Source: Calcarisporiella thermophila CBS 279.70
Taxonomy: Eukaryota; Fungi; Calcarisporiellomycota
DNA: 64,000 bases
Direction of reading: 5' to 3'
Assembly: GCF_041956535.1 (NCBI RefSeq)
Contig: NW_027192192.1
Span: 183,051 to 247,050 of the forward strand
A program made the position numbers and the translations under genes. This document shows, in pieces, positions 28,412-31,030 of the stretch. How positions within the stretch are numbered: the stretch's first letter is position 1; the number at the start of each line of letters is the position of its first letter. The notes below the pieces were generated by a model, which was not told the DNA's origin, ran no database searches, and worked only from the letters and a program-made list of their open reading frames with translations.

Positions 28412-29964
28412 GGCGCGGGTGTGTTAACTAGATGTGGGGGTGGAAAGATAGAAGATTTTAATTCGAAAGGCAGAGTCTCCATAGAACGGTTTTTAAATAC
28501 AAAGCTAGATCTGATATCATTCATTAGATTTCATTCGGGTAAAGCGCCCAGTTTAGAAAAGAGTGGCGATGCTCGGAATTTAACAGTCCGAGTTGGAATG
28601 ATTCACCAACTTACGCATATTAAACTGGTCGGATGTGGAAGATGTTTTTCCGCGCCAGAGAAGGCCTTGGACTCGGCTAAATCACCTGAGGACCGGCTAA
28701 AGAGTAAGTGTGTGAAAAAACCCCTTCATACAATATCAGCTCCCCCATATGCTCAAGGAGAGAGATTATAGTTCAGCGGATTAAATATTTAATTTTCCCA
28801 TGGGCTTCCTAGTGCTTACTCATCTTGGCGTGGTCTACTTGTCACCCGTTTTCTAACGGTGGGTAAAAACTGAACACTTTACTGTCTTGATTCAGACATT
28901 TCCGACCTTCTTGGCTACTTATCGTAGTGGCTATAGCAATCTTTTCCAAAATGCTGTGTCTCAAGTTTGAGCCTGCAGTGATAAAACAAGGGCAATATCT
29001 TCTCTTTTGCCTTGATTTGTATCAGTGTTTGTATCACGGAACTCTCTTGTGAGAATTCAGATTAACAAGGATGCACCACAACGAGCGTTAGTAAAACTCT
29101 GGCAGTGTTAAACACATTAGGCCCCACATTACACGTAATTAAGTTGGAGTATTAATTGGTATGACATCAAAAACTATAATGACAGCGTTCTAATAAAAGA
29201 GGAGACCTCTAATGCCCGCCCCACTTCGCTTTTGCACTGCCGGCGATACGAGCTTTTTCCCCCTGATCCTTGGCGAGGGGGATAGCAATTTTTTATGCTT
29301 TTTCATACTCCTATTTTTAGATTTCGGGCAAAATGAATATCAAGAAAATTATTCAGCCACGAGAGGATATTCTTAGAAAGTCATCCATGCATTGATATTC
29401 AACATGATTTCGGATGAATTCATAGTGTGATGGAAAAATGTCACTGTTATGATCCTGATGATCCTCCGTCCATAGAACACGCCTCTATACTATTGTTAAA
29501 AGAGAGACGAACGACCCATTTTTCCCGCGTTAGATTGAATATAGAAATGTTTTAAAGCAAAGCCACAAACACTATTGCAATATTTTTGTGGAGTAGTTTC
29601 ACGAACACACTTTCTGCAATGAACAGTGGTGTATTGAGCGAGAAGAGGACCTAATCTTTATTTCAAATCTAATCTTTCATCTAAATTTCAGAAATCCAGT
29701 TCTTATTATGAGCGTTACATTGATCCTACATTATTTATTCTTTGGAAAGTATTACATAACATGTGAAAGGTTTCTCTTGTTATACCTTTCCATCTGAATT
29801 TTATCTATTTTCTTATCCTTATAAATAAGGATGCCATTTTGCTTGAAATAGGGGGATCATTAGCAGTTTTTAATACTTTCTGGGATATTTCTTCACATTT
29901 CCAAATTTTTAAGCAACGTTTTTGGAAGCCCTATTAGAAAATTACACACAAGGAAAAGTCCACC

Positions 29965-30303
29965 ATGATAAATTTATTCTATAGCGTTATGACAATGCTC
30001 TTAGGAGTTACTTTTCTAATGGTTCGCGCGGATACAACTACGATATGGGGTGGCAGTGATGGCAACTGCAATAATTGGTCAGGTTATAAAGCACTTGGCT
30101 GTGGATGTCACGATATACCAGCTAGGCCTTTAATGTATTCCTATGGCATCGAGTACAAGGGACAACATACCAAATTTTATAACCGCCGAGGATGCAGTGG
30201 GGAAGTATTGGGAATTTTTACAGAGAGTACGTGCTATCGGGATCCACGGGCTCGGTCTAACAGCATCTGTATCAATTGTAACCCGGGCGGATGGGATTGC
30301 TAA
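29965..30303 (+). CDS. Secreted Cys-rich peptide, MiAMP1-like (beta/gamma-crystallin-fold antimicrobial peptide family)
   Basis: Signal peptide ending VRA-D; TIWGG...CNN, CGC, YKGQ...YN..GCSG, SI.I.C match the recalled MiAMP1 pattern (TVWSGPGCNN, CGC, YTGQ...YNQAGCSG, SIFIQC); TATAAA at about 29820. Confidence 0.78.
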   Translation: MINLFYSVMTMLLGVTFLMVRADTTTIWGGSDGNCNNWSGYKALGCGCHDIPARPLMYSYGIEYKGQHTKFYNRRGCSGEVLGIFTESTCYRDPRARSNSICINCNPGGWDC

Positions 30304-30680: not shown

Positions 30681-31030
30681 TTTTTTTTTTCTCTCGGGAA
30701 GTGAGGGAAAAAATTTTGATAGTTGATAGTTCACTTGATAGTTCTAACCCAAGGGAATAGAACGGGTAGGTTTCCACCTCAATATCACCTAGGTACTGTC
30801 TCTAGCCTCCCATTTTTGAAGTTGGATTTTTCTAAGGATTATTGCTACCTCTTTTTGTAAACATTTGATATTGCTTGTCTACTGCAATACTATTGATATC
30901 CATTGAGTCCTGAGAAAACCCAGCAAACTCCCATGGATGGGCGTCGCCTGCAGAAATGGAACCCGCAAAGCAGTTCAGCCCCGGGATCTCAAATCACTAC
31001 GCCAACCAAGAGAGGACTTTGAAAAGGGCA
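30681..31030 (-). mobile_element. 3' fragment of a decayed non-LTR retrotransposon
   Basis: Poly(T) at 30681-30690 (poly(A) on minus); 30760-30810 resembles 36755-36810. Confidence 0.45.

Follow-up and report, generated by a model that had tools for sequence, protein, structure and literature searches.

An intact, apparently unannotated gene for a putatively secreted MiAMP1-like protein in Calcarisporiella thermophila

A 64,000-nucleotide stretch of the C. thermophila CBS 279.70 genome (contig NW_027192192.1, positions 183,051 to 247,050), hereafter called the window, contains a small gene for a MiAMP1-like protein (Table 1). Its reading frame is unbroken from 29,965 to 30,303 on the forward strand, and no intron is required. 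An in-frame stop codon lies nine codons upstream of the ATG, which is the first one after that stop, and the start context (ccaccATGa) is rated good. An overlapping ORF of 64 aa in another frame is unsupported. The DNA of the gene is single-copy, and its surroundings are gene-poor with a GC content of about 40%. The ORF itself has a GC content of 0.44 and a GC3 of 0.42, and the neighboring genes span the same range. These neighbors are eukaryotic (myosin, Sec2p, PH, and DEP). Contamination was ruled out on the basis of the eukaryotic neighbors on the contig and the location of relatives on fungal scaffolds of 0.8 to 2.25 Mb. The gene is real and intact, and it appears to be unannotated in C. 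thermophila.

Dispersed repeats lie on both sides of the gene. The upstream repeat, which holds the TATA-like box, has approximately six copies with 75 to 79% identity. The downstream repeat is present in at least 30 copies (72 to 88% identity) spread over many contigs. No direct or inverted repeats were found around the gene.

Table 1. Location of the MiAMP1-like gene, its parts, and related loci. Coordinates without a prefix refer to the window.
Feature	Location	Strand	Description
MiAMP1-like coding sequence, complete	29965..30303	+	ATG, 112 codons, TAA; intronless
Probable signal peptide, residues 1 to 22	29965..30030	+	Hydrophobic; putative cleavage after V-R-A, before D23 (by rule)
Mature 90-aa domain	30031..30300	+	One predicted beta/gamma-crystallin-type MiAMP1 domain, eight predicted strands; Pfam residues 26-105
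C102 codon	30268-30270	+	Probable partner of C112
C-terminal extension N-P-G-G-W-D-C	30280..30300	+	Past the end of the MiAMP1 domain; C112 is its last residue
Possible TATA box TATAAATA	29820..29827	+	Read from the sequence; ~140 nt 5' of the ATG; inside a dispersed repeat
Upstream dispersed repeat	29637-29830		
Downstream dispersed repeat	30732-31012		
Paralogue L003	L003:1489-1818 (G000:C3)		~16 kb from L004
Paralogue L004	L004:1477-1803 (G000:C3)		~16 kb from L003
Paralogue L010	L010:1498-1791 (G000:C38:15656-15949)	-	97 aa, four Cys
L027	G000:C23:54040-54273	-	Decayed copy, in-frame TAG
L028	G000:C41:52639-52767	+	Small ORF, signal-like N terminus, few Cys
P0005 gene on L017	L017:1209-1574	+	ENA metagenome contig of 1667 bases, seen in two samples

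A sequence-only reading of this DNA had described an intronless gene with a mature peptide of about 90 aa and eight cysteines, and both the ORF and the cysteine count bear this out. The hydrophobic N terminus and the V-R-A motif fit the pattern of a signal peptide, as that reading proposed, and a comparable hydrophobic N terminus can be read by eye in all eight C. thermophila paralogues. The motifs W..CNN, CGC, Y.GQ....YN..GCSG, SI.I.C, and NPGGWDC are all found in the translation. The mature part has a single N-x-S sequon, at N37, and cysteines at residues 35, 46, 48, 77, 90, 102, 105, and 112. Six of these sit in MiAMP1/PF09117 cysteine columns, in line with the six-cysteine MiAMP1 pattern noted earlier. 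C35, C46, C48, and C77 are aligned with C11, C21, C23, and C49 of MiAMP1, and C105 is the last PF09117 profile position in the Pfam alignment. C90 falls two alignment positions ahead of the fifth cysteine of the MiAMP1 structure (1C01) and in the cysteine column of the family alignment. The MiAMP1 pairs (bioRxiv 10.1101/127746) predict, by homology, three disulfides, C35-C90, C46-C105, and C48-C77.

The remaining cysteines, C102 and C112, form an extra pair beyond the six-cysteine framework. The C-terminal extension and this pair are found together in the window gene, the paralogues L002 and L003/L004, Linnemannia P0004, Mortierella P0033, and P0012; the other relatives have neither. Because both cysteines are jointly present or jointly absent across relatives, a C102-C112 bond, suggested in the sequence-only reading as a fourth disulfide, is probable.

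The mature protein is near neutral, with a pI of 7.7 and a net charge of +0.9. The plant homologue Anthurium AMP1 has a pI of 9.3 and the tested actinobacterial PF09117 protein a pI of 8.67 (PMC9903846), while several paralogues and relatives are acidic. The basic charge of the characterized antimicrobial members, which is a property of those tested and not a formal criterion of the family, is not matched. The near-neutral charge and the acidic relatives therefore weaken a cationic antimicrobial peptide mechanism. In addition, the Ca-binding motif of microbial beta/gamma-crystallins (N/D-N/D-x-x-S/T-S) has no match in the 112-aa protein. The MiAMP1-like fungal effectors are likewise without it (bioRxiv 10.1101/127746).

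Pfam returned a single match for the protein, to PF09117 (MiAMP1), covering profile positions 4 to 76 of 76. The match is significant (E 1.3e-5), in agreement with the proposed family, but borderline, as its 25.8 bits compare with a curated gathering cutoff of 26 bits. A six-frame scan of the genome gave 26.4 bits for the same frame and 34 to 35 bits for paralogues. Among PDB sequences, phmmer matched 1C01 alone, and weakly (E 0.014). A profile of the gene and its four closest relatives (A4) matched 1C01 with an E value of 2.1e-7. Aligned by hhalign with a profile of plant and actinobacterial members (A5), it gave a probability of 98.3% (E 1.4e-14, 41 columns). Ten of the 15 fungal-type relatives match PF09117 individually, and the nearest relatives have precomputed PF09117.16 matches. 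NCBIfam gave no meaningful match for the protein. Since the profile methods concur, the homology is secure; the protein is nonetheless a divergent member.

An AlphaFold2 model, built with the eight paralogues as alignment, has eight strands (pLDDT 87.2, pTM 0.80). Foldseek ranked 1C01 first (E 5.4e-4, TM 0.59/0.68, 31% identity), followed by bacterial and animal beta/gamma-crystallin domains. VIA-align aligned 1C01 over 76/76 residues with a Z score of 10.5, an rmsd of 2.2 Å, and 33% identity; the next rows do not exceed 9.3, with many crystallin domains at Z 8.4 to 9.3. In an ESM Atlas shape search, the top match was a plant "Antimicrobial peptide 1" cluster (TM 0.71), and ascomycete and basidiomycete clusters were listed as well; a feature search was in agreement with the structure matches. 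The predicted model is consistent with both MiAMP1 homology and the beta/gamma-crystallin-type fold put forward from the sequence. Profile and structure evidence together rule out a chance ORF. The observation is beyond chance given the Pfam E value of 1.3e-5, the seven further intact paralogues, and the E value of 2.1e-7 for the subfamily profile against 1C01. We are highly confident of the homology, fold, and family membership of the protein.

Macadamia integrifolia MiAMP1 and the pine Sp-AMPs have a signal peptide and a single small domain, a layout that the window protein, with its probable signal peptide, resembles. MiAMP1 shares with it the six-cysteine framework, the CGC and Y.GQ....YN..GC core, and, in the model, the predicted fold over 76 residues. 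However, the window protein has an insertion of three residues (P-L-M) following the CGC region, the extra cysteine pair, and a seven-residue tail, and it is near neutral instead of strongly basic. The C-terminal "FGW(K/R)SI" motif of MiAMP1 is replaced by "ANSICINC," and the two proteins belong to separate clades. The actinobacterial MiAMP1 family (Streptomyces, Embleya, and Streptosporangium) is comparable in its PF09117 domain and size and has a signal peptide, which is probable in the window protein. Its members differ in having four cysteines and in grouping with plants, features in which they are resembled by the paralogue L010 and not by the window gene.

Among fungi, reports cover an Aspergillus fumigatus "secreted antimicrobial peptide," Cladosporium fulvum Ecp4, Ecp7, and the C-terminal region of CfCE72, and a Rosellinia necatrix candidate (PMC3853031; bioRxiv 10.1101/127746; PMC10796067). 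Similar to the putatively secreted window protein, they are small and secreted, with MiAMP1-like cysteine spacing or fold, and CfCE72 has an additional cysteine pair. However, they come from Ascomycota, mostly plant pathogens. None of these reported proteins was among the close relatives found; the sole ascomycete match, from Lecanicillium, lies on a separate branch. A two-Greek-key architecture, as predicted for the window protein, is shared with the Williopsis (Cyberlindnera) mrakii toxin WmKT/HM-1 and the beta/gamma-crystallins. No sequence similarity was detected, and 1WKT was not among the matches listed by Foldseek or VIA-align.

For relatives elsewhere, the paralogue profile was run exhaustively with HMMER against 1.84 billion representatives; 32 matches in total had an E value of ≤1e-3. 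The fungal matches outside C. thermophila are from Mortierella sp. GBAus27b, Linnemannia elongata, and Lecanicillium (one protein). Plant matches comprise Anthurium, Papaver, and Stephania proteins, and the bacterial ones are Streptomyces and Embleya entries named "MiAMP1 family antimicrobial peptide." The metagenomic protein P0005 and several eukaryote-like contigs complete the set; on one of the latter (L014), the neighbors are actin, Ysc84, and MatE. A word-index protein search with the single window protein found nothing, and searches with the alignments A3 and A4 gave no proteins beyond those from the profile search. Neither bacterial and archaeal genomes nor JGI metagenomes yielded relatives when scanned with single proteins and an alignment of two sequences.

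The nearest relatives outside C. thermophila are the hypothetical proteins KAI8353505.1 of Mortierella sp. GBAus27b and KAK5810270.1 of Linnemannia elongata, with 40 to 44% identity in the mature part. Both are uncharacterized, belong to a different phylum from C. thermophila, and have the same framework. The extra cysteine pair and tail are shared by the Linnemannia protein and by the Logan version of the Mortierella protein. The Mortierella model P0003 (KAI8353505.1) ends in "...SICINFLI"; the Logan version, P0033, ends in "...SICINCKTDGWQC," with the last two family cysteines. The tail of P0033 (...D-G-W-Q-C) bears a cysteine, like those of the window protein and L002. The 3' end of the KAI8353505.1 gene model is probably wrong.

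In the tree, P0005 and the Mortierella protein are sisters (98/98). The gene stretch of P0005 has a GC content of 49% and adjoins a Trans_reg_C and AAA_16 pair at 65 to 67% GC, with a GAGGAGG sequence 8 nt 5' of its ATG. Pattern scans of 185,579 bacterial and archaeal genomes found no relatives. The P0005 locus could be a fungal-type gene within a bacterium or an assembly chimera. In addition, P0016, P0024, and P0028 form a sub-branch of the fungal-type clade that lacks the second cysteine of the CGC core. They have a cysteine two positions before C102, at the S100 column, a shift that suggests a relocated disulfide.

The explanation we consider best, and somewhat probable as a whole, is a secreted MiAMP1-type antimicrobial that is one of eight paralogues and belongs to a fungal-type clade. 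For its secretion, disulfide pairing, activity, and target, we infer the following scheme. Once the signal peptide is removed, the secreted product of the gene would have a mass of about 10 kDa. Its 90-aa mature chain would form one beta/gamma-crystallin-type domain held by the three MiAMP1-type bonds, and the probable C102-C112 bond would anchor the short tail at the C terminus to the final strand. The most likely role would be that of an extracellular, very stable, and mainly antifungal antimicrobial that serves interference competition where substrates are hot and crowded. The protein would probably act at the cell wall of the target, a mode that has been proposed for its relatives in plants and Actinobacteria. 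The antimicrobial role, taken by itself, is plausible but tentative, as it is drawn by analogy. Antifungal activity is on record for MiAMP1 and Sp-AMP3 (bioRxiv 10.1101/127746), and yeast is inhibited by a PF09117 protein from Streptosporangium (PMC9903846). The A. fumigatus secretome includes a PF09117 protein (PMC3853031).

The same fold might instead belong to a beta/gamma-crystallin-like secreted protein with another, non-antimicrobial extracellular role, a reading we regard as rather unlikely while taking it seriously. Candidates are a wall or spore protein with a stress or structural function, an I36-like protease inhibitor, or an effector like C. fulvum Ecp4/Ecp7. C. thermophila is a saprotroph that is not known to have a plant host, and this speaks against an effector. 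Another role would fit the near-neutral or acidic charge of the protein and many of its relatives, and the eight divergent paralogues suggest varied roles. Among the structural neighbors are many beta/gamma-crystallin domains that are not antimicrobial, along with clusters of I36 inhibitors and a domain of a Neurospora perithecial protein. However, the nearest match in both sequence and structure is MiAMP1, not the crystallins or I36, and the crystallin Ca-binding motif is missing. To date, descriptions of MiAMP1-like proteins in fungi concern apoplastic effectors with no assigned biochemical function (bioRxiv 10.1101/127746), but the tested plant and actinobacterial PF09117 members are antifungal (PMC9903846; bioRxiv 10.1101/127746).

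The 28.2-Mb genome contains eight intact, intronless paralogues (the window gene, L002, L003, L004, L005, L006, L007, and L010), all with signal-like N termini. Recent paralogue pairs have dN/dS values of 0.05 to 0.23 in the mature part, and the family is therefore under purifying selection. L003 and L007 match the C. thermophila proteins XP_069255213.1 and XP_069246451.1 exactly. A collection of 15 billion proteins holds no exact copy of the window protein, L002, L004, L005, or L010, nor full-length L006, which occurs in public protein sets only as an N-terminally truncated model of 90 aa. Two of the eight genes are thus intact in the public sets, one is truncated, and five are missing. Small genes of this family seem to be under-annotated.

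That the window gene is a silent relic or recent pseudogene, intact by chance and unexpressed, is very unlikely. Its exact protein is missing from public sets, it stands in a gene-poor region (about 40% GC) with dispersed repeats on either side, and one decayed family copy is known (L027, with an in-frame TAG and lost cysteines). However, the frame, probable signal peptide, all framework cysteines, and core motifs are kept at only 40 to 44% identity to relatives in another phylum, and the start context is good. Moreover, the absence from public sets of four other intact paralogues, with a fifth truncated, points to under-annotation and not to decay.

Several other family loci of C. thermophila have features of their own. 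L003 and L004 are 97% identical in the DNA of the mature part, with six synonymous changes and one nonsynonymous change. Their signal peptides are just 72% identical and their 300-base flanks about 60%. Either very strong constraint or gene conversion restricted to the mature region would fit this pattern. L010, which scores 34 bits on PF09117, has the ending "GFGWKS..ILC" of the plant and actinobacterial MiAMP1 type. It groups with the plant/actinobacterial clade, apart from the other seven copies, on a long branch whose placement is unsure. In L027, the CGC core has become WGC and one more framework cysteine is gone; it is probably a pseudogene. L028 matches the middle of the family profile only (E 0.0145), and its kinship to the MiAMP1-like family is doubtful.

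An unrooted maximum-likelihood tree was calculated from 26 domains and 87 alignment columns. With 97/98 support, it splits into a classical clade, comprising plants, Actinobacteria, L010, and one metagenome protein, and a fungal-type clade. The window gene falls in the latter with L002, Linnemannia, Mortierella, and P0005 (82/76). The inner branches are weak, including the sister grouping of the window gene and Linnemannia (81/33). AU tests rejected monophyly of all eight Calcarisporiella copies (P = 2e-5) and of the seven copies without L010 (P = 7e-5). Because the C. thermophila copies are not monophyletic, the family diversified before, or independently of, the species. No direction is shown for any transfer, since the tree is unrooted and based on 87 columns only.

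A recent horizontal acquisition from a plant, the plant-fungus transfer raised in the sequence-only reading, is highly improbable: the family was first known from plants and the best solved-structure match is a Macadamia protein (31 to 33% identity), but the 97/98 split sets the fungal-type clade apart from the plant/actinobacterial one, forcing the window gene into a clade with plants costs 62.8 log-likelihood units (AU test, P = 1e-4), the closest relatives are from Linnemannia and Mortierella, the GC and GC3 values of the ORF fall in the range of neighboring genes, and even the seven of eight paralogues in the fungal-type clade are not monophyletic, which points to an old diversification. 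On this sequence-based tree, the window gene is a product of old diversification among fungi, as opposed to a recent arrival from plants.

The family as a whole can no longer be described as a plant family, as the earlier reading did. PF09117 is 96% eukaryal, occurs in plant and fungal genomes, and has fungal branches in a published tree (PMC9903846). Its presence in fungal genomes and Actinobacteria has been recorded (PMC9903846, PMC3853031), and C. fulvum effectors have been described (bioRxiv 10.1101/127746). The proposal of an unrecognized fungal branch accordingly stands in a narrow sense, for the subfamily in Calcarisporiella and Mortierellaceae, and fails for fungi generally, as fungal PF09117 members were already published. 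Among the papers searched, we found none that ties MiAMP1 to Mucoromycota-type fungi. What is new is the lineage (Calcarisporiellomycota), the eight-cysteine subfamily with its C-terminal G-W-x-C tail, and a seemingly unannotated gene. Given the fungal PF09117 proteins already published, the general view is unchanged and the addition is modest.

A broader and unlikely reading sees in the MiAMP1-like proteins a secreted arsenal that is old, spans several lineages of early-diverging fungi, and has crossed between kingdoms on more than one occasion. It draws on the eight-cysteine subfamily common to Calcarisporiella and Mortierellaceae, on the closest further member of that subfamily, found on the metagenomic contig L017 with bacterial-type neighbors and a 17-point GC mismatch, and on the grouping of the four-cysteine L010 with the plant/actinobacterial clade. 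If it were true, fungi could be the source, and not the recipient, of the bacterial or plant genes. With the present finding, a known family of small, very stable, antimicrobial-type proteins is extended to Mortierellaceae and to a thermophilic lineage of fungi that has been little studied. The version from a thermophile could serve as a robust scaffold for work on antifungal proteins, and the patchy distribution over plants, fungi, and Actinobacteria makes the family a small case study in gene transfer.
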